Positions 2,365 through 60,340 of a DNA stretch of 64,000 nucleotides are shown one piece after another. The translations under genes were made by a program, and so were the position numbers. The DNA is taken from assembly GCA_038087875.1 (NCBI GenBank), contig CM075985.1, positions 22,258,001 to 22,322,000 of the forward strand, read 5' to 3'. Source of the DNA: Malacoraja senta. Its lineage: Eukaryota. The notes beneath the pieces were generated by a model. That model was not told the origin of the DNA and made no database searches. It saw only the letters and a list, made by a program, of their open reading frames with translations. Position 1 is the first letter of the stretch; each line of letters opens with the position of its first letter.

Positions 2365-2556
2365 NNNNNNNNNNNNNNNNNNNNNNNNNNNNNNNNNNNN
2401 NNNNNNNNNNNNNNNNNNNNNNNNNNNNNNNNNNNNNNNNNNNNNNNNNNNNNNNNNNNNNNNNNNNNNNNNNNNNNNNNNNNNNNNNNNNNNNNNNNNN
2501 NNNNNNNNNNNNNNNNNNNNNNNNNNNNNNNNNNNNNNNNNNNNNNNNNNNNNNNN
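2365..2556. other. Assembly gap (N run)
   Basis: Run of N. Confidence 1.
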
Positions 2557-3390
2557 AAAACTCTGTGGCTGCCATCCGTCCATCCGTCCGTCCGCCTGCT
2601 TGACTTGTGCCACCCAGCCCCTTTGATACCGCCCTACGCCCACACCGCACGCAGAAACGCCGATATTGTTTTCAATTTCGAAAGAGATTTCATTTTTCTT
2701 TACGAATAGCAACTCCTGATTAAATTTCGTCATGTTTATGTACACTTTTTAAAAATAAAATACTTCTCCTCCCCCCACCCCAACATTTCAAAATGTTAAA
2801 CAAACAGCTCTCAGCCATACAATGTTAGTGAAGTTTCAATTGTGTGATGTCACAATGCCCGACCCTCACACATGTCCAATCGGAATGGATCCATTTACAT
2901 ATGCCTTTGCAGCAGCCCCAGCCCCAGCCCCTCCCCCCAACCCCACAGCCTGTGTCGAAGGGCGTCGTCACGTGTGTGGGGGTGATACGGAATGGGGAAA
3001 TTTCAAAATGTTAAAAAAACAGCTCTCAGCAATAGAATGTAAATGAAGGTTCCATTTTGTGATGTCACAATGCCAGATCCTCACAGATGACCAATCGGAA
3101 TGGATCCATTTACATATGCCTTTGCAGCAGCCCCAAGCCCCAGCNNNNNNNNNNNNNNNNNNNNNNNNNNNNNNNNNNNNNNNNNNNNNNNNNNNNNNNN
3201 NNNNNNNNNNNNNNNNNNNNNNNNNNNNNNNNNNNNNNNNNNNNNNNNNNNNNNNNNNNNNNNNNNNNNNNNNNNNNNNNNNNNNNNNNNNNNNNNNNNN
3301 NNNNNNNNNNNNNNNNNNNNNNNNNNNNNNNNNNNNNNNNNNNNCAAGCACTTTCGGGGACCAGACCCAACGGGTCTGCACTTGGTCTAG
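2557..3390 (+). mobile_element. Non-autonomous Helitron, unit I (5' end hidden in gap; second gap 3145-3344)
   Basis: 3' hairpin CAGACCC-AAC-GGGTCTG (3362-3378), then CTAG (3387-3390) followed by T; 5' region homologous to units II, III and V. Confidence 0.8.
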
Positions 3391-6293
3391 TATACTTTTA
3401 AAACTCTCTGGCTGCCGTCCGTCTGTACGTCTGTACGTCTGTACGTCTGTACGTCTGTACGTCTGTACGTACAACGTTCTGCTTGACCTGTCCCGCCTTT
3501 GATACCGCCCTGCGCCCGCGCGGCTCGCGGAAACGCCGATATTTTTTACTGTTTCTAAAGAGGTTACGTTTATCTTTACGAATAGACGATCCTGATTAAA
3601 TTTGGTCGTGTGTACGTACGCTTTTTAAAATAAAATACCTCTCCCCCCCCCCAAACCAAACATTTCAAAATGTTTAAAAAAACAGCTCAGCCGTAGAATG
3701 TTAGTAAAGATTCCGTTGTGTGATGTCACAATGCACAATGGTCACAGATGTCCAATCGGAATGGATCCATTTACATATGCCTTTGCGGCGGGCCCAGCCC
3801 CGGCCCCTCCCCCCCAACCCCCGCAGCATTGGGCATTGTGACATCACAAAACGGAACCTTCATTTACATTCTATTGCTGAGAGCTGTTTGTTTAACATTT
3901 TGAAATGTCCCCATTCCCTATCACCCCCACACGTGGCGACGCCCTGCGACACGTGTGACAAATCGAAATGAATCCGTTTACATATGCCTTGGCAACAGCC
4001 CCAGCCCCAGCCCCTCCCCCCCAACCCCACAGCCTGTGTCGCAGGGCGTCGCCACGTGTGTGGGGGGATAGGGAATGGGGACATTTCAAAATGTTTAAAA
4101 AAACAGCTCTCAGCAATAGAATGTTAATGAAGGTTCCGTTTTGTGATGTCACAATGCCCAATGCTCAAAGATGTCCAATCGGAATGAATCCGTTTACATA
4201 TGCCTTGGCAGCAGCAACAGCACCAGCCCCAGCCCCTCCCCCCCACCCCCACAGCCTGTGTCGAAGGGCGTCGTCACGTGTGTGGCAATAGAGAAAGAGG
4301 ATTGGGGGTGATAGGGAATGGGGTAACAGATGGACTGTCCCTACCCCTCCTACTTCAACTCTCCCTCCCCACTCTTCCCCCTCTCTCCTCTCCCCCTCCC
4401 TCCCCTCCCACACCCTCTCTTCCCCCTCCACCACCCCTCTTCACCCCCATCTCCCCCTACCCCCTTCCCCTCTCTCTTGCACCACTCCCCGCTACCCCTC
4501 TGCCCCTCACTCACCACTCTTCCCCTCTCCCTCCCCCACCTCTATCCCTCCCCCCTCCCTCTCTCCCTCTCTTCCCCCTACTCCTCTCCCCTTCCCCTCA
4601 TCCCCTCTCTCCACCTCTAACATCCCCTCCCCCCTTCCTGCCCTCCCCGCTCTCCTCCCACTCCCCACTCTCCTCCCCGTCCCTCTCCCCCCACCCTGCT
4701 CTCTTCTCCCTCACCAATCTCTCCCCTTTCCTCCTCCCCCTCTCTCCTCCCTCCCCTCCCTCCCCTCTTCTCTCCCCACCCCGTCTCCCTCTCCCCCTCC
4801 CCCCTCTTCTCCCCCAACACCATCGCCACCCTCCACCCTCCCCCACACCTCTCTACCCTTCTCCTCGCCTTACTCACCCCTCTCTCCTCCCCCTCTCCAC
4901 CCCCTTCTCCTCACTCCTCTCCCTCTCATCCCCCTCCTCCTCCCACCCCCATTACTCTCTCCCACATCCCCCTTCCCTCTCTCACCCCGTCCCCTTCCCC
5001 CTACCCCGCTATCCCTCTTCAACCACTCCCCCTGCACCTCTCCCCCTCCCTCTCTTCCACTTCCACCACTCCCCCTACACCTCTCCATCTCCCCATTCTT
5101 CCACTTAACTCCCAAACCCATCCCCACCTCCCTCCACAACCCCCACCCCCACCCCTCTCCCCCCTCCCTTCTCTCTCACTCCCCACTCTTCCACTCTCCC
5201 TCCCCCACCTCTATCCCTCCCCCCTCCTTCTCTCCCTCTCTTCCCCCTACTCCTCTCCCCTTCCCCTCATCCCCTCTCTCCACCTCTAACATCCCCTCCC
5301 CCCCTCTCCTCCCTTCCTGCCCTCCCCGCTCTCCTACCACTCTCCTCCCCCTCCCTCTCCCCCACCCTGCTCTCTTCTCCCTCACCAATTTTCTCCCCTT
5401 TCCTCCTCCCCCTCTCCCCTCCCTCCCCCTCTCCTCTTCTCTCCCCACCCCGTCTTCCTCTCCACCCCTCCCCCCGCCTGTGTTTGGGGGGTGGTTAGTG
5501 TGAGTGTGATGTCGCAGTCCCCCCCCCCCCCGCAAACGCGCGTTGGGAAAACAGCCCGCCAACAGTCTCTCTGTCTTTAAGACAGAACTGCAGATGCTTG
5601 AAAATCAATGGTACACAAAAAAATGCTTCATAACCTCAGCGGGTGCAGCAGCATCTATGTATCAAAAGAAATAGACAACGTTTCGTGAAAACCCGTCTGA
5701 GGATGGGTTTCCGCCAAAAGCATTGCCCATTTCCTTCACTCCATAGATGCTGCTGCACCCGCAGTGTTTCTCGAGTTTTATTGTGTGTACCAGTCTATCT
5801 GTCTCTCCCCTCTCTCTCTCTCTCTGCCCTTCTCTCTTCACAGCCCGCGACTCAACTCATGCACGCCTGCTCCAACCCACCCCCTTCACCTCTCTCCCCA
5901 TCCTCTTCTACCTCTCCAACCCTCTCCTCTCTCACCCTCCTCTCTCCCCACCTTCCTCACCCCCCTTCCTCTCAACCCTCCTCCTCCCCCACCTCACAAT
6001 TTTTTTTTCTAACATTAAATTTTCTCTCTCTGCACCACCCCCCCTCGAGACGTACCTGAGAGGTGAGGGCTATTTGTCAGTGGATAGGGTGGAGATGGAA
6101 TAAAAGAAGAAAATTAAAATATTAATATAATATCAAGGGGTGTGATGAGTGTGTGGGTTTGTGGGTGCCAGATTCACACCCTGCAACCCTGCTTTGGAGG
6201 TACAGACCCAACGGGTGGTTAGTGTGACGTCACAGCCCCCCGCCCCAAACGCACGTTCGGTGTCCAGACCCAACGGGTCTGCACTTGGTCTAG
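3391..6293 (+). mobile_element. Non-autonomous Helitron, unit II
   Basis: Starts TATACTTTTAAAACTC; ends in hairpin 6265-6281 and CTAG 6290-6293; contains (GTCTGTAC)n, ~200-bp subrepeats with a local inversion (~3830-3960), a C/T-rich tract and a Penelope-derived palindrome. Confidence 0.8.
4340..5480. repeat. Polypyrimidine (C/T-rich) low-complexity tract; related tract at ~6800-7520
   Basis: Almost purely C/T on the + strand with internal duplicated blocks. Confidence 0.95.
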
Positions 6294-8317
6294 TATACTT
6301 TTAAAACTCTCTGGCTGCCGTCCGTCTGTACGTCTGTACGTCTGTACGTCTGTACGTCTGTACATCTGTACGTACAACGTTCTGCTTGACCTGTCCCGCC
6401 TTTGATACCGCCCCGTGCCCGCGCGGCGCGCGGAAACGCCGATATTTTTTACCGTTTCTAAAGAGGTTACGTTTATCTTTACGAATAGACGATCCTGATT
6501 AAATTTGGTCGTGTTTAGGTACGCTTTTTAAAATAAAATACCTCTCCCCCCCCCCAAACCAAACATTTCAAAATGTTTAAAAAAACAGCTCAGCCGTAGA
6601 ATGTTAGTAAAGATTCCGTTGTGTGATGTCACAATGCACAATGGTCACAGATGTCCAATCGGAATGGACCAATTTACATATGCCTTGGCAGCAGCCCCAG
6701 CCCCTCCCCCCCACCCCCGCAGCCTGTGTCGAAGTGCGTCGCCACGTGTGTGGGAATAGAGAAAGATGATTGGGGGTGATAGGGAATGGGGAACAGATGG
6801 ACTGTCCCTACCCCTCTTACTTCCACTCTCCCTCCCCCTCCTCTCTCCTCTCCCCCTCCCTCTCTTCCCCCTACTCCTCTCCCCTTCCCCTCATCCCCTC
6901 TCTCCACCTCTAACATCCTCTCCCCCCTTCCTGCCCTCCCCGCTCTCCTACCACTCCCCACTCTCCTCCCCCTCCCTCTCCCCCACCCTGCTCTCTTCTC
7001 ACTCACCAATCTCTCCCCTTTCCTCCTCCCCCTCTCCTCTTCTCTCCCCACCCCGACTGTCCCTACCCCTCCTACTTCCACTCTCCCTCCCCACTCTTCC
7101 CCCTCTCTCCTCTCCCCCTCCCTCCCCTCCCAAACCCTCTCTTACCCCTCCACCCCCCTCTTCACCCCCATCTCCCCCCACCCCCTTCCACTCTCTCTTG
7201 CACCACTCCCCGCAACCACTCACTCCCAACTCTTCCCCTCTCCCTCCCCCACCTCTCTCCCTCCCCCTCCCTCTCTCCCTCTCTTCCACCTACTCCTCTC
7301 CCCTTCCCCTCATCCCCCCTCTCCACCTCTAACATCCCCTCCCCCCCCTCTCCCCCCTTCCTGCCCTCCACGCTCTCCTCCTAACTCACCACTCTCCTCC
7401 CCATCCCTCTCCCCCACCCTACTCTCTTCAACCTCACCAATCTCTCCCCTTTCCTCCTCGCCCTCTACCCTCCCTCCCCCTCTCCTCTTCTCTCCACACC
7501 CCGTCTTCCTCTCCCCTTCCCCCCGAGTGTGTTTGCGGGGTGGTTAGTGTGTGTGATGCCGCAGCACCCCCCCCCCCCTTCCCGCAAACGCGCGTTGGGA
7601 AAACAGCCCACCAACAGTCTCTCTGTCTTTAACACGGAACTGCAGATGCTGGAAAATCAAAGATACACAAAAAAAAGCGGTATAACATCAGCGGGTGCAG
7701 CAGCATCTATGGATCGAAGGAAATAGGAAACGTTTCAGGTTAAAAAAAAAACCTGAGGATGGGCTTCGGCCCAAAGCTTTGCCTATTTCATTCGCTCCAT
7801 AGATGCTGCTGCACCCGCTGTGTTTCTCCAGCTTTTTTTTGTGTACCAGTCTCTCTGTCTCTCCCATCTCTCTCTCTCTCTCTCTGCCCTTCTCTCTTCA
7901 CAGCCCGCGGCTCGACTCATGCACGCCCGTTCCAAACACCCCCTTCACCTTTCTCCCCCATCGTCTCCTTCCTCTCTCCACCACTCTCCTCTCTCCCCCT
8001 CCTCTCTCCCCACCTTTATCTCCCTCCTCCTCCATCCCTCTTCAAATTTTTAACATTAAATTTTGTCTCTCTGCCACCCCCCCTCTAGAAGCACCTGAGA
8101 GGTGAGGGCTATTCATCAGTGGATAGGGTGGAGATGGGATAAAAGAATCAAATTTTAAAATTAATGTAATATCAAGGGGTGTGATGAGTGTGTGTGTTTG
8201 TGGATGGAGGATTCCGTGCATTGGAGGAAAGGGGGTGGTTAGTGTGACGCAACAGCCCCTCCCCCCCCGCAAACGCACATTCGGTGTCCAGACCCAACGG
8301 GTCTGCACTTGGTCTAG
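6294..8317 (+). mobile_element. Non-autonomous Helitron, unit III
   Basis: Near-identical 5' end to unit II; same hairpin followed by CTAG 8314-8317. Confidence 0.8.
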
Positions 8318-9514
8318 TATACTATTAAAAGTCTCGACTTGTTTGTCCGTCTGTGATCTCAGGAGCTACGCCAAAACGGTACACAATAGCGTAAATTTTT
8401 TTGCAGAATCTTACTCAGCTTTTTCCCGTGGTCATTCATATCAAGTTTCTTCACATTTTATGTTATATTTCACATTATTGACATTCCAAGGTTGAAACAA
8501 ATCCACTTTAACAAGATTTTAAAGGCTCTGTCTTACCTGTTTGCGGTCATCGGCGGTGAAGCGCGGCGTCGCCGGTAGCAAGGACCGCGCGACAACGGCG
8601 AGAGCGTCGAGCCTATCCACCGGAGCGCCGCACGGATGCTGCGCGGGGGCCGAGTTAATTCAAACACGGCGGGTCCCACGTGCTTGCGGTGAGTAAATAA
8701 ACGGGCGGGCCGACTGCGATGACGTCGGCCCGCCGCACGTGACTCACCAGCGGCGGCTGTGGCAGTGGAGGTTTGACGCACGGCGCTCGAGCCATACTGG
8801 CGGCGTCCGTGCGAGCGGCCGTGCCTCACTGGCGGCGGCACGTGCCTCACTGGCGGAGGCTGTGGCAGTGGAGGTTTGACGCACGGCACTCGAGCCATAC
8901 TGGCGGCGGCCCGTGCGAGCGGCCATGCCGCACTCGTGCATCACTGGTGGAGGTTGTGCGGTGAGTATTTAGTTTTGGACATTGTCGATTTTATTTTAGC
9001 ACCGCGCGGTGTTGGGAACACCGCCGCACGGCCCGGGAATTGTACTTTCTCACGAGTGCGTGGTCTATGGCGGCAGATTCTTCCCGTTTCGCCGTCATAG
9101 ACCGCAGACTCGTGAGATAGGCCTTTTACTCTTAGAATCCTTCCTGCCAGCTTCCAACAAACTTCAATACAAAGTTGCAATACAGGAACACTGTGTTTCC
9201 ACCAACTTTTCACCTGAATGGGATATCACAGTCCTCCACCTGACATTTGCAACAATGTTGCCATCATACAGCACTTACTCCAGCTCCTTGCAGGACAGGA
9301 GGGGAGGGTGAATTGGGGAAATGCAATTGGATTTTTTTTTAAACTCCAGTGCTGTGGAGGCAGGGGAGTGTTGGAATCTTATGTTCGGCAATGGGGGACC
9401 ACACCTCCCATGGGGGCTCCGGGTTAGTGGTGCAATACTGCATTGGGGAACGGGTTGCATCCGGGGACCAGGCCTCCCGTGTGACAGGGACCTGACAAGT
9501 CCCAGTTAGTCTAG
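8318..9514 (+). mobile_element. Non-autonomous Helitron, unit IV (different subfamily)
   Basis: Starts TATACTATTAAAAGTC (compare intact TCTATATAATTAAAAGTC at 43711); ends GGGAC..GTCCC hairpin and CTAG 9511-9514; GC-rich core with ~100-bp tandem duplication at ~8750-8950. Confidence 0.7.
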
Positions 9515-9528
9515 TATCTATCTATCTA

Positions 9529-10016
9529 TCTATATACTTTTAAAACTCTCTGGCTGTCGTCCGTCTGTACGTCTGTACGTCTGTACGTCTGTACGTCTGT
9601 ACGTCCGTACGCCGCCTTTGATACCGCCCCTGGCCCACACAGCGCGCGGAAAGGCCCATATTTTTTACCATTTCCAAAGAGATTACATTTATCTTTACGA
9701 ATAGCCACTCCTGATTAAATTCGGTCCTGTTTATGTACACGTTTTTTTAAATAAAATCCATCCCCCCCCCACCCCCATGTGATTTTCTCCAATTGTCTCC
9801 GATTTTCTCAGAAAACGACGCCATCTTTTTTTCTCCGATTTTCTCCGAAAACGACGCCATCTTTTTTTCGCCGATTTTCTCCGATTTTTTCCGAAAACGA
9901 CGCCATCTTTTTTTCAGCAGATTTTCACCCCGGGGTCTGAAGCACGTTCGGGAACAACACCCCAGGGTGTCAAGCACTTTCGGGGACCAGACCCAACGGG
10001 TCTGCACTTGGTCTAG
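9529..10016 (+). mobile_element. Non-autonomous Helitron, unit V (complete TC...CTAG)
   Basis: TCTATATACTTTTAAAACTC start preceded by a (TCTA)n run; ~35-bp internal repeats 9795-9915; hairpin followed by CTAG 10013-10016. Confidence 0.8.
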
Positions 10017-10562
10017 TATATTACTAAAACTCTCATCTTGTTTGTTCGTTCCCGAAACTCCACAGAAATGGTACACAATAGTGCAACAATTTTAGGCCCA
10101 CCTTACTCACCATTGTCCTGCGATGTGCATTAAACAAGATTCATTCAGATTGATGTTATATTTTACAAGCTCCCACTTGCCAGCCATGCCTGTGCAGTTG
10201 GGGGAGGGTTGCCATGCGCATCACAACAGGGATCTCTGGCATCTCAACGGGAACCTCTCAGCCGCGCCTGCGCAGTTGGGACTTTTGCCGATTTTCAGTT
10301 CGCCTTTTTTTTTTCAAGTGTATTTGCCTGACCTCACAACGGGGACCCAACGACTCCACGGGTAAGTTTCCTACTATTTTACAAATGCCTCCATGGGTCC
10401 TCTATTCACTTTATTAACTTTAACTTAATTTCTGCCGCAAACGGCACAACTTTGAACGTGGCAGTAGTGCCTATGCAGTGCGGGTCCATCAGCAGCACCC
10501 ATGCAGTTTGGTGGAATACTGTGCTGGGGGAACGGAACCCAACGGGTCCACGCTTGGTCTAG
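10017..10562 (+). mobile_element. Non-autonomous Helitron, unit VI
   Basis: Starts TATATTACTAAAACTC; ends GGAACCC-AAC-GGGTCC and CTAG 10559-10562 followed by T. Confidence 0.7.
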
Positions 10563-10624
10563 TTATAATTAAAACGGGTTTTGTAATTACTTATAAAGAA
10601 TTGGGCACAACTATAGAGAACAGG

Positions 10625-11582
10625 TCGGTGGTGCAACAGTAGAGTTGCTGCCTCAAGGGCCTGTCCCACTTGGCCGTCATTTGCACCTCATTTACGTGTC
10701 ATATGTAAAATAGGTCGACGCGTCGTGATGCACGACGTCGCGTGCAAATCACGCATCAGCACAGCCGTCTGGTGCGTGTGACGTCATTAGAATACCCTGC
10801 AGCGCGCGGCAACGCATGGTTACGGATGTCGATGCACGGCGACATAACCATGCGTCACCACGCGATACACGTGAGACGTCGGGACGCCAGCTTGTGACGC
10901 CAATGCGTCAGCGTGCGTACGCGATACGTCACTCAGGTGGCGTGCGAGGATTTTGATACCGTGCACCACCGCATGTGATACCACGCGCCACCGTATGCGA
11001 TACCGCGTGCCACCGCATGTGATTCCATGCCGCACCATGCGCAATACGTGCGTCACCCACGCGCACCTCACGCATCACGACTCGTCGACCTATTTTACAT
11101 ATGAAGCGTAAATGAGGCGCAAATGACGGCCACGTGGGACAGGCCCTTTACAGTAGCAGCCCCAGACATCCAGGTTCGATCCTGACTATGGGTGCTGTCT
11201 GTATGGAGTTGGACGTTCTTCCCGTAATCACGTGGGTTATCTCGCGGGTGGAGACGGAGGAGAGAGAGAAGGGGAAGAGAAGCGAGAGAGAGGGGGGTTG
11301 GGGAGAGAAGGGGGGAGAGAAGGGGGAGAGAGAGAAGGGAGGGGAAGAGAGAGGAGGAGAGAGAGGTGCTCTCTGTATGGAGTTTGTACATTCTCCCTGT
11401 TTTTTTCTGGGTGCTCTGGTTTTCTCCCACAAATTCAAAGACGTACAGATTTGTAGGTAAATTGGGTTCTGTAAATTGTCTGTAGTCAGTTGGATAGAAC
11501 TAGTCTATGGGTGAACCTTCTGGTCGGCACAGACTCAGAGGGCTGAAGGGCCTGTTTCTATGCTGTTACTATAAACTAAACT
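10625..11582 (+). mobile_element. tRNA-derived HE1/V-SINE-like SINE, interrupted by a MITE and a GA-rich insert
   Basis: A-box-like GGTGGTGCAACAGTAGAG, B-box GGTTCGATCC, V-domain-like core, CR1-like 3' end and (TAAAC)n tail. Confidence 0.75.
10656..11147. mobile_element. PIF/Harbinger-like MITE
   Basis: Long (~75-bp) TIRs AGGGCCTGTCCCAC.../...GTGGGACAGGCCCT; 3-bp flanks TCA/TTA in a host SINE whose other copies read GCC-TTA-CAG. Confidence 0.8.
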
Positions 11583-35310: not shown

Positions 35311-38300
35311 GTTCAAGTGAGTTTATTGTCATGTGTCCCTGATAGGACAATGAAATTCTTGCTTTGCTTCAGCACAACAGAACATAGAAGGCATTGACTA
35401 CAAAACAGATCAGTGTGTCCATATATCATTATATAAATATATACACACATAAATAAATAAACTGATAAAGTGCAAATAACAGATAATGGGCTATTATTGT
35501 TCATAGGTTTGTCCGAGCCAAGTTTAATAGCCTGATGGCTGTGGGGAAGTAGCTATTCCTGAACCTGGTCGTTGCAGTCTTCAGGCTCCTGTACCTTCTA
35601 CCTGAAGGTAGCAGGGAGATGAGTGTGTGGCCAGGATGGTGTGGGTCCTTGATGATACTGCCAGCCTTTTTGAGGCAGGGACTGCGATAGATCCCCTCGA
35701 TGGAAGGGAGGTCAGAGCCGATGATGGACTGGGCAGTGTTTACTACTCTTTGTAGTCTTTTCCTCTCCAGGGCGCTCAAGTTGCCGAACCAAGCCACGAT
35801 GCAACCGGTCAGCATGCTCTCTACTGTGCACCTGTAGAAGTTAGAGAGAGTCCTCCTTGACAAACCGACTCTCCGTAATCTTCTCAGGACGTAGAGGCGC
35901 TGATGTGCTTTCTTAATAGTAGCATCAGTGTTCTCGGACCAGGAAAGATCTTCAGAGATGTGCACGCCCAGGAATTTAAAGCTCTTGACCCTTTCAACCA
36001 TCGACCCATTGATATAAACGGGACTGTGGGTCCCCATCCTACTCCTTCCAAAGTCCACAATCAGTTCCTTGGTTTTGCTGGTGTTGAGGGCCAGGTTATT
36101 GTGCTGGCACCATATGGACAGTTGCTCGATCTCTCTTCTGTACTCTGACTCATCCCCATCAGTGATACGTCCCACAACAGTGGTGTCGTCAGCGAACTTG
36201 ATGATGGAGTTCGCACTATGACCGGCTACGCAGTCATGAGTATAGAGTGAGTACAGCAGGGGGCTGAGCACGCAGCCTTGAGGTGCTCCCGTGCTGATTG
36301 TTATCGAGTCTGACACATTTCCATCAATACGAACAGACTGTGGTCTGAGAATGAGGAAGTCGAGGATCCAATTGCAGAGGGATGCGCAGATACCCAGTTC
36401 TGCGAGTTTGGTAACCAGCTTGGAGGGGATGATTGTATTAAATGCCAAGCTGTAATCGATGAATAACAGCCTGACATATGAGTTTTTGTTGTCCAAGTGG
36501 TCCAGAGCAGAGTGGAGGGCCAGCGAGATCGCATCCACCGTTGATCTGTTGTGGCGGTAAGCGAACTGCAGTGGGTCCAGGTTTTTGTCGAGGTGGGAGT
36601 TGATTTGCACCATGATCAACCTCTCAAAGCACTTCATCACCACTGGCGTTAGTGCCACAGGTCGATAGTCATTGAGGCACGTCACCTAGCTCTTCTTGGG
36701 CACCGGTATAATTGATGCCCTTTTGAAGCAGGTGGGAACCTCAGACCTCAGAAGTGAGAGGTTGAAAATGTCCGTAAAAACTCCAGCCAGTGAGTCCGCA
36801 CAGGTTTTTAGAACACGACCAGGTATACCATCAGGTCCAGGCGCTTTTCGAGGGTTCACCCCTCTGAAGGATTTCCTGACGTCGGCCTCTGTGACTGAGA
36901 CTGAAATACCATCACAGCGAATGGGAGCTTGGGAAGGCACATCGGTGTTCTCCCTATCAAAGCGTGCGTAAAACGCATTGAGCTCATCAGGGAGTGATGT
37001 TTCGCCGACATTCGAGCTGCCTCCTGATTTCGCCTTGTAGGAGGTGATTGCATTCAGGCCCCGCCACAGCTGCCGAACATCTGTCTCATCCTCCAGTTTG
37101 GAGCAGAAGTCCCTCTTGGCCTTTTTGATGGCCTTACCAAGGTCGTATCTGGACTTCTTGTAGACCACTGTGTCATCAGACATGAATGCCCGGTGTCTGG
37201 TCTTCAGAAGAGTGCGGATCTCAAAGTTCATCCAAGGTTTCTGATTGGGAAACACTCGGAAGGTTTTTGTAGGGATGCAGTCGTCCACACACTTCTTAAT
37301 GAAGTCTGTAACGACTGTGGCGTATTCGTTCAAGTCCGTTGCCGAGTCCTTGAACATTGCCCAGTCTACAGACTCCAAACAGTCCTGTAGTTGTTCCTCT
37401 GCCCTCCCCCCCCCACCCCCCCCCCCCCCCCCCACAGGAAGAAGCAGCACCGCAGTATGGTCGGATTTACCGAAGTGAGGGCGAGGGATAGAGCAATAGG
37501 CATTCTTGATGGTGGTGTAGCAGTGGTCGAGGGTGTTTGGTCCTCTGGTGCAGCAGGAGACATGTTGGTGGAAATTAGGGAGTGATTTCTTTAGGTTTGC
37601 CTTATTGAAGTCCCCAGCAATGGTGGTAAATGCCTCGGGGTAAGACGTCTGATGTTTGTTGACCACGGCGTGCAGCTCCTCCAGTGCCAGACGGATGTCT
37701 GCCTGGGGTGGGATGTAGACCGCGGTCAGGATGATGGAGGTGAATTCCCTTGGAAGGTAGAAGGGACGACACTTCACCGCCAGATGTTCGAGGTGTGGAG
37801 AGCAGGAGTTGGACAGGACTGCCACGTCTGAGCACCACGCAGAGTTGACCATGAGGCAGACGCCCCCTCCTCTCCCTTTCCCAGATGCCAGTGTACGGTT
37901 CATACGATGGATGGAAAACCCTTCAGGCTGGACCGCTGAGTCTGGGGAGCTGGGGGTGAGCCATGTCTCTGTAAAACAGAACACAGAGCATTGCCTCAGC
38001 TCCCTTTGATAAAGCAGTCTTGCCCTTAAGTCCTCCTCTTTATTTTCAAGGGACTGTACGTTGGCCAGTAGGATAGTAGGGAGAGGGGCCAAAGTCCCCT
38101 GCGCTTCAGTCTGACCTGAAGTCCTGCCCGCCGGCCACGTTTCCGGACACAATGGATGCTTCCTCTTTGTTTCCAGGTACTGTGCTTACTGTACCTGCTG
38201 TATCTGCGGACCTGCGCTGGAACGGGGATTCCTTCACATACGGCAGCTCCAGCTCCGCAACGAACGGGGGTACATTCAAAGTCGGCAGCTCCAGCTTCAT

Positions 38301-40888: not shown

Positions 40889-41591
40889 CTAGACTAAGTG
40901 GGACCCATTGGGGCCCAGCATCACACGGGAGGGCTGGTCCCCCAACGCAATATTCCACATCTCCACCAATTCCAATATTGGTGGCCAGTGGGGGGGGGGG
41001 GGGGCTTTCTGGAGCGCTAGCACGGGTGTCGTGGGCTGAAGGGACTGGTTTCCAGAGGGCTAGTATGGACATTGTGGGCCAAATGGATTCTTGGGCTGGC
41101 GGCTCAGTCACTCAAGCCTGTTGTGCTGGCAGCTCACTCACTCATGGCTGGTGGGCTGGCAGTTGACTCACGGCTATTCCTTCAAATTCCATTTCAAGCA
41201 GGGTGCAAGGCCACCAAATTCAATTGCAGTTTCTTACCACTTCAAGCAAGGTGCAAGGCCACTAAAGACAGCGAGTCATGACCTCTCCCTCCACCATCTT
41301 GCAGAGACTGACCCACACCCACACTTCTGGGTTTTATAGTCCCTCCCCCCTCCCACCAGAAGGGGCGTGGCCTTCATGGCGCGATTGACAGGAGAGAGAA
41401 TCTCAACATTTTTAAAACACTAATAACTCTTTTAATTTTCATGGATGGGAAAAATCTTCGGTACCAGATGAGTGGAGGGGGACTCTGAGTAAGATGACCA
41501 AAAATCACAGCCGTACTTGGTAGTGTTTTTTTTTAAATCAATATAAAGCGCAAACAGGAAGTGGTCAAGATTAGACTTTTAATTATATAGA
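40889..41591 (-). mobile_element. Non-autonomous Helitron (same family as 43711-45318)
   Basis: Minus strand reads TCTATATAATTAAAAGTC ... GGGCCCCAATGGGTCCC-ACTTAGT-CTAG|T; both ends homologous to 43711-45318. Confidence 0.85.
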
Positions 41592-43710: not shown

Positions 43711-45318
43711 TCTATATAATTAAAAGTCCCATCTTGACCACTTCCTGTCTGCGCTGTATATTGATTTTAGAAAAAATGCTACCTTTTATGGCTGTGATTT
43801 TTGGCCATCTTACTCTTAGTCCTCCTCCGCTGTGCAGGCCCCGAGTATTTTTCCGATCGATTAAAAATAAAAGTGTTATGAGTGTTTAAAAAACCTTGAG
43901 ATCCTCTCTCCTGTTAATCACCGTGATGAAGGTAACGCCCCTTTTAAGGGGGGGGGGGCAGGACTATAAAACCCCAGATGCCTGGACATGACTCAGTCTC
44001 TCTGCAAGATTGCGAGGGAGAGGCCACGACTCTCATTCTGCTGTGAATCAACTGAACTGTAAGTCTGCAATGTACTTGAATAAATGATTTGTTAGCCCTT
44101 AATGAAAATGAAATGAGTTGTTTGGCCCGCCCTGTGCTTTGAAACTGCAATGGCAATGGAAGTGAAATGAAACTGCAATGAGCTGTTTGGCCTGCCCAGT
44201 GCTTGAAACTGCAATGGCAATGGAAGTGAAATGAAAATGCAATGAGCTGTTCGGTCTGCCCTGTGCTTGAAACTGCAATGGCAATGGAAGTGAAATGAAA
44301 ATGCAATGAGCTGTTCAGCCTGCCCTGTGCTTGAAACTGCAATGGCAATGGAAGTGATGAAAATGCAATGAGCTGTTCGGCCTGCCCTGTGCTTGAAACT
44401 GCAATGGCAATGGAAATGAAATGAAAATGCAATGAGCTCTTTGGCCTGCCCTGTGCTTGAAACTGCAATGGCAATGGAAGTGAAATAAAAATGCAATGAG
44501 CTGTTCGGCCTGCCCTGTGCTTGAAACTGCAATTGAAATGGAAATGAAATGAAAATGCAATGAGCTGTTTGACCTGCCCTGTGCTTGAAATTGAAATGAA
44601 ATGAAATGAGTTGTTTGGCCTGCCTGAAACCACTAATTTTGGCCCACAAGGCCCATATTAGCCGAGAAACCAGTGCCTTTTGCCCAAAATGCACGTATTA
44701 ACCCAGGAGGAGCATTTTGGCCCAAAAGGCCTGTGCCAGGCCAGGAAAAGTCCAGAAAAAGTGCCTTTCACTGAGATTTCACTCAGATTTATTTTAAAGA
44801 GCCCCTTCTGCCCATCAGGCCTGTACTAGCCCAGGAGGTCCCTTCGGCCCATCAGAAAGTATTCCCCCTGCAAGTATTAAACCTCATCTCAGTATTTTTC
44901 TCCCTCCCTTCATTGGCTCCGTGTGAGATCCAGGCCAGGATAGACTTTCATCCTTCATTGCTGTAATCTGCAGAAAAAGATGAAAAATGACTAAAATTGA
45001 TTCTCCACCCTCTCCCCCTTCTCTCTCACAGAGTCTCTCACCTGTTTTTGGCAGAATTTCTGGCAGTTTCTGAGCTGCCAGCCCACCAGGCATGAGTGAC
45101 TGAGCTGCCAGCCCAAGAATCCATTCGGCCCACAATGTCCATAATAGCCCTCTGGAAACCAGTCCCTTCGGCCCACAACACCCATACTAGCGCTCCGGAA
45201 AGCCTCCCCCCCCTCCCACTGGCCACCAATATTGGAATTGGTGGAGAGGTGGAATATTGCGTTGGGGGACCAGCCCTCACGTGTGAAAATGGGACCCAAC
45301 GGGTCCCACTTCGTCTAG
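43711..45318 (+). mobile_element. Complete non-autonomous Helitron
   Basis: A|TCTATATAATTAAAAG...GGGACCC-AAC-GGGTCCC (45291-45307)...CTAG|T; inserted between A and T with no TSD. Confidence 0.92.
44100..44630. repeat. ~64-bp minisatellite, ~8 copies, inside the Helitron
   Basis: Unit GCCCTGTGCTTGAAACTGCAATGGCAATGGAAGTGAAATGAAAATGCAATGAGCTGTTCGGCCT. Confidence 0.95.
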
Positions 45319-46315: not shown

Positions 46316-47335
46316 TACTACACCTCTTCCCACCCTGCTTCCTGTAAGGACTCCACCCCTACTCCCAATTCCTCCATCTACGCCGCATCTGCACCCAGGA
46401 TGAGATGTCCTCATTCTTCAAGGAACGGGGGTTCCCCTCTTCTCCTATAGATGAGTCTCTCACCAGGGTCTCTTCTATACCACGTGACTCTGCTCTCACT
46501 CCCCATCCCCCCACTCGTAACAAGGGCAGAATCCCCCTTGTCCTCACCTTCCACCCTACCAGCCGTCACATACAACAAATAATCCTCCATCATTTTCGCC
46601 ACCTCCAACGGGATCCCACCACTGGCCACATCTTCCCATTTCCTTCACTGTCTGCTTTCCGCAGAGACCGCTCCCTCCGTAACTCCCTAGTCATTTCATC
46701 CCTTCCTACCCAAACCACCCCTTCTCCTGGCACTTTCCCTTGCAACCGCAGGAAATGCTACACTTGTCGCTTTACCTTCCCCCTTGACTCCATTCATGGA
46801 CCCAAGCAGTCTTTCCAGGTGCGGCAGAGGTTCACCTGCACCTCCTCCAACCTCATCTATTGCATCCGCTGCTCTAGATGTCAGCTGCTCTACATCGGTG
46901 AGACCAAGCGTAGGCTTGGCAATCGCTTCGCCCAACACCTCCGCTCGGTTCGCATTAACCTACCTGATCTCCCGGTGGCTCAGCACTTCAACTCCCCCTC
47001 CCATTCCGAATCCGACCTTTCTGTCCTGGGCCTCCTCCATGGCCAGAGTGAGGATGACCATAAATTGGAGGAGCAGCACCTCATATTTCGCTTGGGCAGT
47101 TTGCACCCCAGCGGTATGAACATTGACTTCTCTAATTTCAGGTAGTCCCTGCTTTCTCCTTCCCTTCTCAGCTCTCCCTCAGTCCCCTGTCTCTGCCTCT
47201 TCCTTTCTTCTTCCCTCCCCCCCCCACCCTCACATCAGTCTGAAGAAGGGTCTCGACCTGAAACGTTGCCTATTTCCTTCGCTCCATAGATGCTGCCTCA
47301 CCCGCTGAGTTTCTCCAGCATTTTTGTCTACCTGT
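46316..47335 (+). mobile_element. 5'-truncated Penelope-like retroelement (RT thumb end, GIY-YIG endonuclease, 3' UTR)
   Basis: ORF 46405-47145 with NLIYCIRCSRCQLLYIGETKRRL..RF..H, VAQHFN and GMN motifs; upstream YTSSHP..CK motif. Confidence 0.92.
47240..47267 (+). ncRNA. Minimal type I hammerhead ribozyme motif in the Penelope 3' region
   Basis: CTGAAGA-A-GGGTC-TC-GACCT-GAAA-CGTT. Confidence 0.7.
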
Positions 47336-57505: not shown

Positions 57506-60340
57506 GTGAAAGGTGAGATGCGTAAGGAATTAAAAGTATTGTATATGAATGCGCAAAGTATAAGAAGTAAAGTAGATGAGCTTGAGGCTCAGTTAGAGGT
57601 TGGTAGATATGACATTGTGGGGATTACTGAGACATGGCTGCAGGAGGATCGGGCCTGGGAACTTAATATTCAGGGTTATACATCCTATAGAAAGGACAGG
57701 CAGGTGGGCAGAGGAGGGGGGGTAGCTCTGCTGGTGAGGGATGGAATTCAGTCCCTTGCGAGGGAGGACATAGGGACTGACGAGGTAGAGTCACTGTGGA
57801 TTGAGTTGAGGAATTGTAAAGGCAAGAAGACACTAATTGGTGTTATTTACAGACCCCCAAATAGTAGCCCGGATGTAGGGTGTAAGTTGCAGCAGGAGTT
57901 AAAACTGGCATGTAGCAAAGGTAACGCCACTGTGGTGATGGGGGATTTCAATATGCAGGTAGACTGGGAAAATCAGGTTGGTTCAGGATCCCAAGAAAGA
58001 GAGTTTGTAGAATGCCTCCGAGATGGATTCTTAGAGCAGCTTGTAATGGAGCCGACCAGAGAAAAGGCAATTCTGGATTTAGTGTTGTCCAATGAACCAG
58101 ATATGATAAGAGAACTCGAAGTAAAGGAACCGCTTGGAGGTAGTGATCATAATATGATTAGTTTTAATCTGCAATTTGAGAAGGAGAACGTTAAATCGGA
58201 AGTGGCAGTGATGCAGTTGAACAAAGGGGACTATGAAGGCATGAGAGGGGAGCTGGCCAAAGTAGACTGGAAAGGGATCCTAGCAGGAATGACGGTGGAA
58301 CAGCAATGGCAGGAATTTCTCGGCATAATCCGGGAGACGCAGGATCATTTCATTCCAAAAAGGAAGAAAGATTCTAAGGGGAGTAGGAGGCAACCGTGGC
58401 TGACAAGAGAAGTTAGGGATAGAATAAAACTAAAAGAAAAGATGTATAACACAGCAAAGAGAAGCCGGAAGCCAGAGGATTGGGAAACTTTCATAGGACA
58501 ACAGAAGGAAACAAAACGGGCAATACGGGCTGAAAAGATGAAGTACGAGGGGAAGCTGGCCAGAAATATAAAGAAGGACAGTAAAAGCTTCTTTAGATAT
58601 GTTAAGGGAAAAAGAGTAGCAAAGTCAAATGTGGGTCCCTTGAAGGCAGACACGGGTGAAATTATTATGGACAACAAGGAAATGGCAGAAGAGTTGAATA
58701 GGTACTTCGGATCTGTCTTCACTAAGGAAGACACAAACAATCTCCCAGATGTACTGGAGGACAGAGGCTCTCAGGGGGTAGAGGAACTGAAAGAAATTTT
58801 CATTAGGCGAGAAATAGTATTGGGTAGGCTAATGGGACTAAAGGATGATAAATCCCCTGGGCCTGATTGTCTGCATCCCAGGGTCCTCAGGGAGGTGGCT
58901 CTAGAAATAGTGGACGCATTGGTGATCATTTTCCAATGTTCAATAGATTCAGGATCAGTTCCTGTGGATTGGAGGATAGCTAATGTTATCCCACTTTTCA
59001 AGAAAGGAGCGAGAGAGAAAACGGGGAATTATAGACCAGTTAGCCTGACTTCGGTGGTGGGAAAGATGCTGGAGTCAATTATTAAAGATGTAATAATGGG
59101 GCATTTGGATAGTAGCAAAAGGATTAGTCCAAGTCAACATGGATTTATGAAAGGGACATCATGCTTGACTAATCTTCTGGAATTTTTTGAGGATGTGACA
59201 AGTAAAATGGATGAAGGGGTGCCAGTGGATGTAGTGTATCTAGACTTTCAGAAAGCCTTTGATAAAGTCCCGCACGGGAGATTGGTGACTAAAATTAGAG
59301 CACATGGTATTGGGGGTAGGGTGTTGACATGGATAGAAAATTGGTTGGCAGACCGGAAGCAAAGAGTAGGAGTGAACGGGTCCTTTTCAGATTGGCAGGC
59401 AGTGGCGAGTGGAGTGTCGCAAGGCTCGGTGTTGGGGCCGCAACTGTTTACCATATATATTAATGATTTGGAAGAGGGAATTAGGAGCAACACTATCAAG
59501 TTTGCAGATGACACAAAGCTGGGTGGCAGTGTGAACTGTGAAGAGGATGTTAGGAGGTTGCAGGGTGACCTGGACAGGTTGAGTGAGTGGGCAGACGCGT
59601 GGCAGATGCAGTATAATATAGATAAATGTGAGGTTATCCACTTTGGCGGCAAAAACAAGGGGGCAGATTATTATCTCAATGGGGTTAGGTTAGGTAAGGG
59701 GGAGGTGCAGCGAGACCTGAGTGTACTTGTACACCGGTCACTGAAAGTTGGCGTGCAGGTACAGCAGGCCGTGAAGAAAGCTAATGGAATGTTGGCCTTC
59801 ATAACAAGTGGATTTCAGTATAGGAGTAAAGAGGTTCTTCTGCAGTTGTATAGGGCTCTGGTGAGACCACATCTGGAGTATTGTGTACAGTTTTGGTCTC
59901 CTAATTTGAGGAAGGACATCCTTGTGATTGAGGCAGTGCAGCGTAGGTTCACGAGATTGATCCCTGGGATGGTGGGACTGTCATATGAGGAAAGATTGAA
60001 AAGACTAGGCTTGTATTCACTGGAGTTTAGAAGGATGAGGGGGAATCTTATAGAAACATATAAAATTATAAAAGGACTGGACAAGCTAGATGCAGGAAAA
60101 ATGGTCCCAATGTTGGGCAAGTCCAGAACCAGGGGCCACAGTCTTAGAATAAATGGGAGGTCATTTAAGACTGAGGTGAGAAAAAACGTTTTCACCCAGA
60201 GAGTTGTGAATTTATGGAATTCCCCGCCACAGAGGGCAGTGGAGGCCAAATCACTGGATGGATTTAAGAGAGAGTTAGATAGAGATCTAGGGGCTAGTGG
60301 AGTCAAGGGATATGGGGAGAAGGCAGGCACGGGTTATTGA
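57506..60340 (+). CDS. CR1 ORF2: APE endonuclease and reverse transcriptase (944 aa, uninterrupted)
   Basis: YMNAQS, GITETW, YRPP, GDFN, SDH, NYRPVSLTS, YLDFQKAFD, QGSVLGP and KFADD motifs. Confidence 0.95.
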   Translation: MKGEMRKELKVLYMNAQSIRSKVDELEAQLEVGRYDIVGITETWLQEDRAWELNIQGYTSYRKDRQVGRGGGVALLVRDGIQSLAREDIGTDEVESLWIELRNCKGKKTLIGVIYRPPNSSPDVGCKLQQELKLACSKGNATVVMGDFNMQVDWENQVGSGSQEREFVECLRDGFLEQLVMEPTREKAILDLVLSNEPDMIRELEVKEPLGGSDHNMISFNLQFEKENVKSEVAVMQLNKGDYEGMRGELAKVDWKGILAGMTVEQQWQEFLGIIRETQDHFIPKRKKDSKGSRRQPWLTREVRDRIKLKEKMYNTAKRSRKPEDWETFIGQQKETKRAIRAEKMKYEGKLARNIKKDSKSFFRYVKGKRVAKSNVGPLKADTGEIIMDNKEMAEELNRYFGSVFTKEDTNNLPDVLEDRGSQGVEELKEIFIRREIVLGRLMGLKDDKSPGPDCLHPRVLREVALEIVDALVIIFQCSIDSGSVPVDWRIANVIPLFKKGAREKTGNYRPVSLTSVVGKMLESIIKDVIMGHLDSSKRISPSQHGFMKGTSCLTNLLEFFEDVTSKMDEGVPVDVVYLDFQKAFDKVPHGRLVTKIRAHGIGGRVLTWIENWLADRKQRVGVNGSFSDWQAVASGVSQGSVLGPQLFTIYINDLEEGIRSNTIKFADDTKLGGSVNCEEDVRRLQGDLDRLSEWADAWQMQYNIDKCEVIHFGGKNKGADYYLNGVRLGKGEVQRDLSVLVHRSLKVGVQVQQAVKKANGMLAFITSGFQYRSKEVLLQLYRALVRPHLEYCVQFWSPNLRKDILVIEAVQRRFTRLIPGMVGLSYEERLKRLGLYSLEFRRMRGNLIETYKIIKGLDKLDAGKMVPMLGKSRTRGHSLRINGRSFKTEVRKNVFTQRVVNLWNSPPQRAVEAKSLDGFKRELDRDLGASGVKGYGEKAGTGY

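Follow-up and report, generated by a model that had tools for sequence, protein, structure and literature searches.

Helitrons integrate as single strands, between A and T, and produce no target duplication (PMC4778049). For Helraiser, insertion at A^T (here and below, a caret marks a junction or a point of insertion) goes together with a strong preference for AT-rich DNA, most of it on the side that flanks the transposon's 3′ end. The 5′-TC junctions of Helraiser are always canonical, the left terminal sequence (LTS), i.e., the 5′ end, is essential, and the circle junction reads CTAG-TC (PMC4778049). Here, we describe 8 kb of DNA of Malacoraja senta in which at least five, and probably six, different non-autonomous Helitrons are joined head-to-tail. 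This pile, as we call it, lies in a stretch of 64,000 nucleotides (assembly GCA_038087875.1, contig CM075985.1, positions 22,258,001 to 22,322,000 of the forward strand), hereafter the window, whose numbering is used throughout.

Arrangements that resemble the pile have been described in several lineages. In maize, two unlike Helitrons with different cargo were described in 2008 as lying head-to-tail in one orientation, as the units of the pile do (PMC2267711). The maize pair was read as the result of consecutive insertions and not as a tandem repeat, and one model has the insertion at an A^T at the resident's 5′ end (PMC2267711). In contrast to the pile, the maize CTAG^TC junction keeps the whole head (position 0), whereas here the cut is at +4, the elements are stacked five to six deep, and orphan TCTA tetranucleotides are present. 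The tandem arrays of Helibat in Myotis (PMC2267711, PMC5876387) and the Helraiser circles (PMC4778049) share with the pile the CTAG end, the 3′ hairpin, the AT-rich TC..TATA.. left end and the head-to-tail layout. The Myotis junctions are exact CTAG^TC joints between copies of one element and are ascribed to rolling-circle replication, unlike the junctions here, which join unlike units and from which TCTA is missing.

For the fungal Helitron2 elements, Chellapan et al. 2016 (PMC5148889) proposed insertion into, or 2 bp upstream of, another element's 5′ end; three tandem copies were explained by repeated 5′-end insertion or by rolling-circle replication, with composites arising afterwards. The fungal elements differ from those of the pile in having asymmetric terminal inverted repeats, the cases are few, and neither a fixed +4 site nor leftover tetranucleotides were reported for them (PMC5148889). 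The nested helitrons of maize (Dong et al. 2011, PMC3288121, citing Yang & Bennetzen 2009 and Du et al. 2009) likewise show a preference for sites near or within other helitrons, and their several 3′ ends, including damaged pseudo-ends, resemble the dead tails of two units of the pile. A site-specific hit on a head is not described for them, and the lineage is a plant one. Elements of the IS91 family resemble Helitrons in their HUH transposases, in the lack of target duplication and in one-ended read-through, and the tetranucleotide that they target is a close relative of the one at their own end (PMC13181058). They are bacterial and have another protein architecture, so the likeness is an analogy of working and not one of membership. 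Helitron-derived tandem arrays are also known in Xenopus (PMC12001565). Our literature search found no paper on Helitrons in skates or rays. The pile shows, in sharper form, a habit already seen in maize, bats and fungi; it differs from those cases in the fixed cut four bases into the head, in the diversity of its units and the depth to which they are stacked, in the TCTA left over and in the host lineage.

Six homologous Helitron 3′ ends, each consisting of a hairpin and CTAG, are found on the plus strand of the pile, at 3390, 6293, 8317, 9514, 10016 and 10562. The four that close at 3390, 6293, 8317 and 10016 share an identical 27-mer, GACCCAACGGGTCTGCACTTGGTCTAG. An earlier reading of this DNA, made from the letters alone (the sequence-only reading), had proposed a hairpin-CTAG pattern, which matches five times in the window and not once in 100 shuffles. 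A tail-profile search of the 64 kb returned exactly eight tails, namely the six of the pile (with E values of 1e-7 for 9514 and 3e-10 for 10562) and those of two solo copies, at 45318 on the plus strand and at 40889 on the minus strand. The corresponding head-profile search returned eight heads, every one of them part of the same elements as the eight tails. DNA folding gives good GC-rich hairpins, with a stem of 7–8 bp and an AAC loop, for the tails at 3390, 6293, 8317, 10016 and 45318, in each case 8–10 nt upstream of CTAG; the hairpin of the solo tail at 40889 is weaker. The six hairpin-plus-CTAG termini named in the sequence-only reading are thus borne out as six homologous tails, of which those at 9514 and 10562 have decayed hairpins (z-scores of −0.27 and +0.9) and retain homology to the others.

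CTAG, which fits the CTRR consensus, closes all eight tails of the window. The next base is T in eight of eight, the next two are TA in seven of eight, and TA(C/T)A follows in six of eight, in agreement with A^T insertion of the canonical kind and a preference for TAYA. By their ends and flanks, the elements of the pile are canonical (Helitron1-type, Helibat-like) non-autonomous Helitrons. A Helitron2/Helentron identity was considered and rejected, given the CTAG ends, the A and T flanks and the absence of asymmetric terminal inverted repeats; when the reverse complement of the first 12 bases of each unit was sought in its last 80 bases, the best matches had 5–7 mismatches. No RepHel open reading frame (ORF) is present in the 64-kb window, the large ORFs of which are those of reverse transcriptases of long interspersed elements (LINEs) and of a GIY-YIG protein. 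Since the window has no Rep/helicase gene, all of its Helitrons are called non-autonomous.

The units, numbered I to VI from left to right, all have the same orientation, and their positions are given in Table 1. At 3390, 6293 and 8317 the junction reads CTAG^TATAC, and at 10016 it reads CTAG^TATATTAC. At 9514, the sequence is CTAG^TA(TCTA)4^TATAC, which places the tail 18 bases from the head, and the end at 10562 reads CTAG^TTATAATTAAAAC. Unit V and both solo copies start with TCTATATA (in full, TCTATATACTTTTAAAAC for V and TCTATATAATTAAAAG for the solo copies). Judged by these complete heads, the four direct junctions lack exactly TCTA. The sequence-only reading had CTAG running directly onto a 5′ end short of its first TC or TCTA at these four places; the direct joints are as described, and the missing piece is TCTA. 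The window contains 9032 A^T sites on both strands, of which 281 have a head-like AT-richness downstream, and eight heads. Since all four direct junctions are nevertheless at one and the same head position, a generic preference for AT-rich DNA is insufficient to account for them.

Table 1. Units of the pile, assembly gaps and solo Helitrons in the window.
Feature	Positions	Strand	Description	Basis
Assembly gap, 192 N	2365–2556		Covers the pile's left end and bases 1–9 of the unit I head	
Unit I(a)	2557–3144	+	A-type head from its tenth base and body modules; 84% like II, 77% like V	Sequence comparison
Assembly gap, 200 N	3145–3344		Separates I(a) from tail I(b)	
Tail I(b), 46 bp	3345–3390	+	Hairpin and CTAG; identical to the V tail	Sequence comparison, folding
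Unit II, 2903 bp	3391–6293	+	A-type head without TCTA; (CGTCTGTA)6 run; live tail at 6293	
Unit III, 2024 bp	6294–8317	+	Same family as II; live tail at 8317	
Unit IV, 1197 bp	8318–9514	+	B-type head without TCTA; different tail type; decayed hairpin	
TA and three extra TCTA units	9515–9528	+	With V's own TCTA, forms (TCTA)4	
Unit V, 488 bp	9529–10016	+	A-type; the pile's only complete TCTATATAC head; tail identical to I(b)	
Unit VI, 546 bp	10017–10562	+	Head without TCTA; decayed hairpin	
TTATAATTAAAAC	10563–10575	+	Directly after the last CTAG; like a solo-type head minus TCTA, over 12–13 bases only	
Solo Helitron	40889–41591	−	Head TCTATATAATTAAAAG at 41591; tail CTAG^TACATATATA at 40889	
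Solo Helitron	43711–45318	+	aaca^TCTATATAATTAAAAG ... CTAG^TACAAAAT; A precedes the head, no target-site duplication	

The units of the pile are unlike one another. The heads of I, II, III and V are of one type (A type). Those of IV and VI, 69% alike over 160 bp and clearly distinct, both differ from the A type, and the heads of the solo copies form a third type, apart from the A-type and the IV/VI heads. The tails of I and V match at 46 of 46 positions and those of II and III at 45 of 46, and the tails of IV and VI are each unlike all others, that of IV being related to the tail of the solo copy at 40889. Altogether, the units of the pile comprise three head types and four tail types, with differing cargo and with lengths from 488 to 2903 bp. 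Units II and III have 95.6% identity over their first 437 bp and 79–89% elsewhere, II being about 880 bp longer. The five junctions represent five different pairings of tail and head, which indicates separate events and rules out both one amplified composite and one rolling-circle concatemer.

These comparisons sort the remaining claims of the sequence-only reading. The 3′ ends that it had assigned jointly to I and V, and to II and III, are indeed shared. Its different heads for IV and VI are clearly distinct, but they are related. The different subfamilies to which it had assigned the units hold insofar as heads, tails and cargo vary, but I, II, III and V have one head family, and II and III are close relatives. 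Of its six Helitrons, five or more stand, and the sixth, which is probable, hinges on unit I, in which there is a gap. The sequence of I(a) is a 588-bp island, flanked by two N gaps, that starts at the tenth base of an A-type head and ends within an internal module repeated several times in units I and II; the sequence restarts after the second gap just 46 bp ahead of the CTAG at 3390. For that reason, continuity of I(a) with its tail cannot be assumed, and "unit I" may be two elements, with further ends concealed by the gap at 3145–3344. No N gap is present from 3345 to past 10562.

Several features of individual units are recorded here. Thirty bases into each A-type head, there is a perfect or near-perfect (CGTCTGTA)6 run (3420–3470, 6323–6373 and 9562–9611). 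The interior of unit II has duplicated and inverted internal modules and a long CT-rich tract. A dead internal copy of the unit's own tail is present in both II (about 5470–5565) and III (about 7520–7615); it has lost 10 bases of its hairpin and reads AGTCTCT in place of GGTCTAG. About 750 bp, including a palindrome like that of a short interspersed element (SINE), separate the dead tail from the live one. Dead internal tails of this kind point to a multi-terminus Helitron family. The cargo of unit IV, at about 8523–9057, is 61% GC with a CpG observed/expected ratio (o/e) of 1.27, and it contains a 50-bp tandem repeat and two short ATG-started stretches that end in GTGAGT donors (about 8634–8694 and 8925–8964). 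Judged by these sequence features, it looks like a captured promoter and first-exon region. Unit V has an internal tandem repeat of 36–46 bp.

We propose that the pile was built by successive, independent, canonical A^T insertions at the TCTA^TATA of a resident head, a reading to which we give a probability of roughly 0.6. The complete 5′ end, TCTA^TATA(C/A/T)-TTAAAA, would offer an A^T four bases inside the head with an AT-rich stretch after it. The reason for the site preference may be that this target, TCTA^TATACTTTTAAAA, resembles the element's own 5′ cleavage site (A^TCTA), the TATA after the cut being similar to the first bases, TCTA; the targets of the IS91 family offer a parallel (PMC13181058). 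A transposase loaded with an incoming copy would cut the resident head at +4 and join the newcomer in the same orientation. The newcomer's CTAG would then adjoin the resident's TATAC, and the resident would lose its TCTA and, probably, also its ability to be nicked and hence to move. The orphan TCTA would remain on the left, before the newcomer's intact head, which would be the next target. We infer an order of events in which the pile grows leftwards, with the older units on the right and (TCTA)n building up at the left edge.

Several observations fit this proposal. A^T insertion at TCTA^TATA would, by canonical chemistry alone, account for the loss of TCTA, for the shared orientation of the units and for the TCTA run before V. 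Given the A^T targets, the preference for AT-rich DNA and the canonical 5′-TC junctions of Helraiser, insertion into a head needs nothing unusual, whereas a 5′-truncated newcomer placed after a G would. Extra TCTA units stand before V, the one unit whose head is intact, as fits the former left edge of a pile; these TCTA units may be what was left of heads by earlier insertions or may come from microsatellite slippage. Unit VI, with its decayed hairpin, a CpG o/e of 0.65 (against 1.41 for V) and a body that is found in three organisms, makes the rightmost unit look the oldest. The preference of the sequence-only reading for repeated insertion over a concatemer is upheld to the extent that the units are too unlike for a concatemer, the junctions lack TC and the A^T site explains the loss of TCTA; it is qualified by the possible duplication of II and III and by the gap at the left end.

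Other observations weigh against successive insertion at TCTA^TATA. The (TCTA)4 before V predicts four units from V rightwards, whereas the count there is only two, or three with the 13-base stub at 10563 included; we, therefore, reject (TCTA)n as a strict tally of units. As a speculation, the excess of TCTA could come from slippage or from loss of units by recombination between same-oriented heads. Unit IV did not insert at TCTA^TATA; its point of insertion is two bases ahead of the TCTA run. Units II and III may stem from a local duplication, since they are closely related and their junctions are identical. The left edge of the pile, where a full head and several TCTA units are predicted, falls within the gap at 2365–2556. 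The arguments from CpG and from distribution among species bear on families and cargo and not on dated copies. The order of the units rests on the assembly, the public unitigs of 65–110 bp being too short to confirm it, and the tally of what follows CTAG covers the 64-kb window. No paralogous empty site was found when the two flanks of the pile were compared by BLAST with the window.

The public reads were searched as Logan contigs on 7560–10750, in four runs of three organisms (A, B and F), which gave the short unitigs just mentioned. Contigs on heads and tails number in the tens of thousands across the four runs and three organisms, and their word depths sum to 1e4 to 1e6. The two runs of organism F are the only ones to contain the cargo of IV (8523–9057), the body of V (9593–9913) and most of 7881–8201 in III; in the reads of F, the IV cargo has a very high depth. 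The heads, the tails, the VI body and the 3′ part of IV are found in organisms A and B as well. Unitigs that align from 10005 rightwards, across the CTAG and into a VI-like head, number 36 in A and 29 in B; upstream of CTAG, these have another hairpin subtype, GGGACCCAACGGGTCC. Other unitigs match the tail up to and including CTAGTATAT, and from there they lead into various AT-rich sequences. Tail-to-head junctions of this kind therefore exist in other species.

A metagenome scan with the hairpin-CTAG pattern of the sequence-only reading returned 58 loci. Three of these are Helitron relatives (L025, 1139–1310; L033, minus strand, about 1290–1400; L044, 200–330), and the rest resemble chance bacterial matches. 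The three relatives come from one whole-genome shotgun set (JAAUYJ01...) and have the hairpin core GCGACCCAACGGGTCGC, as in the window, and a similar head, ..AAAACTCTGCGTTGTATGTATGTCTG... In all three, CTAG leads straight into a head, and two of these heads are without TC. L025 reads CTAG^TCTATTATATAAAACTC, a precise CTAG^TC junction, and since its first 111 bases recur at the end of the contig, it is either a tandem or a circle. L044 reads CTAG^TTATAATATC, and L033 reads CTAG^TAATAATAT, with cargo that differs on the two sides. The CTAG-to-head habit is thus not limited to this assembly or host. At the position that corresponds to the (CGTCTGTA)6 run of the A-type heads, the related metagenome Helitron has (GTAT)n. 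A viral-contig scan gave no match to the Helitron tail, and a protein word search with the ORF spanning the 10016 junction gave none either. An ORF beside the L033 tail was considered as a transposase remnant and dropped, since a Pfam scan gave no support.

Part of the pile may have come ready-made. Of two Helitrons already joined head-to-tail, the left one could run past its own 3′ end as far as that of its neighbor (end bypass) and so produce a multi-terminus composite that then spread, so that V^VI or II^III, for example, was inherited as such. End bypass has been shown experimentally for Helraiser (PMC4778049), and multi-terminus helitrons derived from nesting are known in maize (PMC3288121). 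The dead internal tails show that multi-terminus families are present here, and the dozens of unitigs in two other organisms that join a tail to a VI-like head are what a spreading composite would leave. The pairings speak the other way: the five junctions are all different, and tails of one type are followed by different heads (I is followed by II but V by VI, and II by III but III by IV). Moreover, the first junction of any composite would still need an insertion targeted to a head, so that this explanation reduces the number of local events and does not replace the mechanism. We consider it unlikely.

Local duplication, or unequal crossing-over between similar elements of the same orientation, would require fewer insertions than units and would concern II and III above all. 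The likeness of their first 437 bp and of their tails (45/46), the identical junctions and the collinear layout are as expected from such an event. However, the body of II has about 880 bp of additional modules, the identity of the two bodies is only 79–89%, I, IV, V and VI are not derivable from one another, and the absence of TCTA at each direct junction is left unexplained. Duplication is a rather improbable origin for parts of the pile.

A misassembly would mean that high-copy heads and tails were misjoined, the types of junction being real somewhere and the order of the units not. The two N gaps at or in the pile, the extreme copy number indicated by word depths of 1e4 to 1e6, and the lack of any public contig of more than 110 bp across a junction are in its favor. 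However, the 7.2 kb from 3345 to 10562 are free of gaps and include 1.2-kb low-complexity CT tracts that short-read assemblers rarely cross, each unit has private variants, and the CTAG-to-head pattern is also present in unrelated metagenome contigs. These points leave an artefact with a small chance only.

Growth in the opposite direction, in which newcomers without their first four bases are pasted after a resident's CTAG, at a G^T site, is highly improbable. A G/T junction was considered for the maize pair (PMC2267711), and Helraiser occasionally uses dinucleotides other than AT (PMC4778049). Even so, rightward growth would have to combine one irregularity, a 5′ cut at +4, with another, a G^T target, in every event, and in all Helraiser insertions examined, the 5′-TC junctions were canonical (PMC4778049). 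It also leaves the TCTA run before V unexplained, and the rightmost unit looks the oldest, not the youngest. Finally, a single rolling-circle concatemer, or a tandem array from one circular intermediate, is refuted for the pile as a whole. Perfect head-to-tail junctions and circles are known for bat Helitrons, and the metagenome relative L025, with its CTAG^TC junction, looks tandem or circular. The units here, however, vary in length and cargo as well as in their heads and tails, only II and III being close, and are joined as CTAG^TATA without TC, whereas a circle junction is CTAG-TC.

The surroundings of the pile and the solo copies are described for completeness. The 13 bases after the last CTAG may be either a seventh head reduced to a stub or a host target that looks like a head. 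They are the first bases of an imperfect palindrome at 10563–10596 (TTATAATTAAAACGGGTTTTGTAATTACTTATAA) and mimic a Helitron head without TCTA. Beyond 10575, unrelated, partly palindromic DNA is followed by a tRNA-like SINE (10626–11210), which adjoins the right side of the pile and is split by an element of 494 bp (10655–11148). This element has terminal inverted repeats of 84 nt, 90% complementary, and is like a miniature inverted-repeat transposable element. The two solo Helitrons belong to one family and are inverted, with their heads facing, 2.1 kb apart; the longer one contains a minisatellite with a unit of about 60 bp at roughly 44100–44600. With a CpG o/e of about 0.3, the solo copies look older than the pile. 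The solo head at 41591 follows a T and not an A, one exception to A^T insertion. Elsewhere in the window, there are an ORF with a GIY-YIG nuclease domain at 46405–47142 (possibly of a Penelope-like retroelement) and LINE-type ORFs at 35504–38152 (minus strand) and 57506–60337 with RVT_1 domains, one of them together with Exo_endo_phos, which shows a neighborhood rich in transposable elements.

It is tempting to propose, tentatively, that the transposase of this lineage homes to the left ends of residents and cuts them at TCTA^T. If so, its elements would form oriented piles in the "safe" DNA of their own dead relatives, and the residents would be disabled by the loss of their first four bases. 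As a by-product, (TCTA)n microsatellites would be seeded, and the multi-terminus composites that drive the shuffling of cargo would be set up. Head-to-tail Helitrons are commonly cited as footprints of rolling-circle replication. Unlike units with a shared four-base truncation point instead to site-specific insertion into the left ends of residents, and if this is general, many of the arrays credited to rolling-circle concatemers would be the result of serial self-targeted insertions. The finding thus bears on the choice of target by the transposase, on the clustering of Helitrons, on the origin of the multi-terminus composites that shuffle cargo and on the birth of a tetranucleotide microsatellite.

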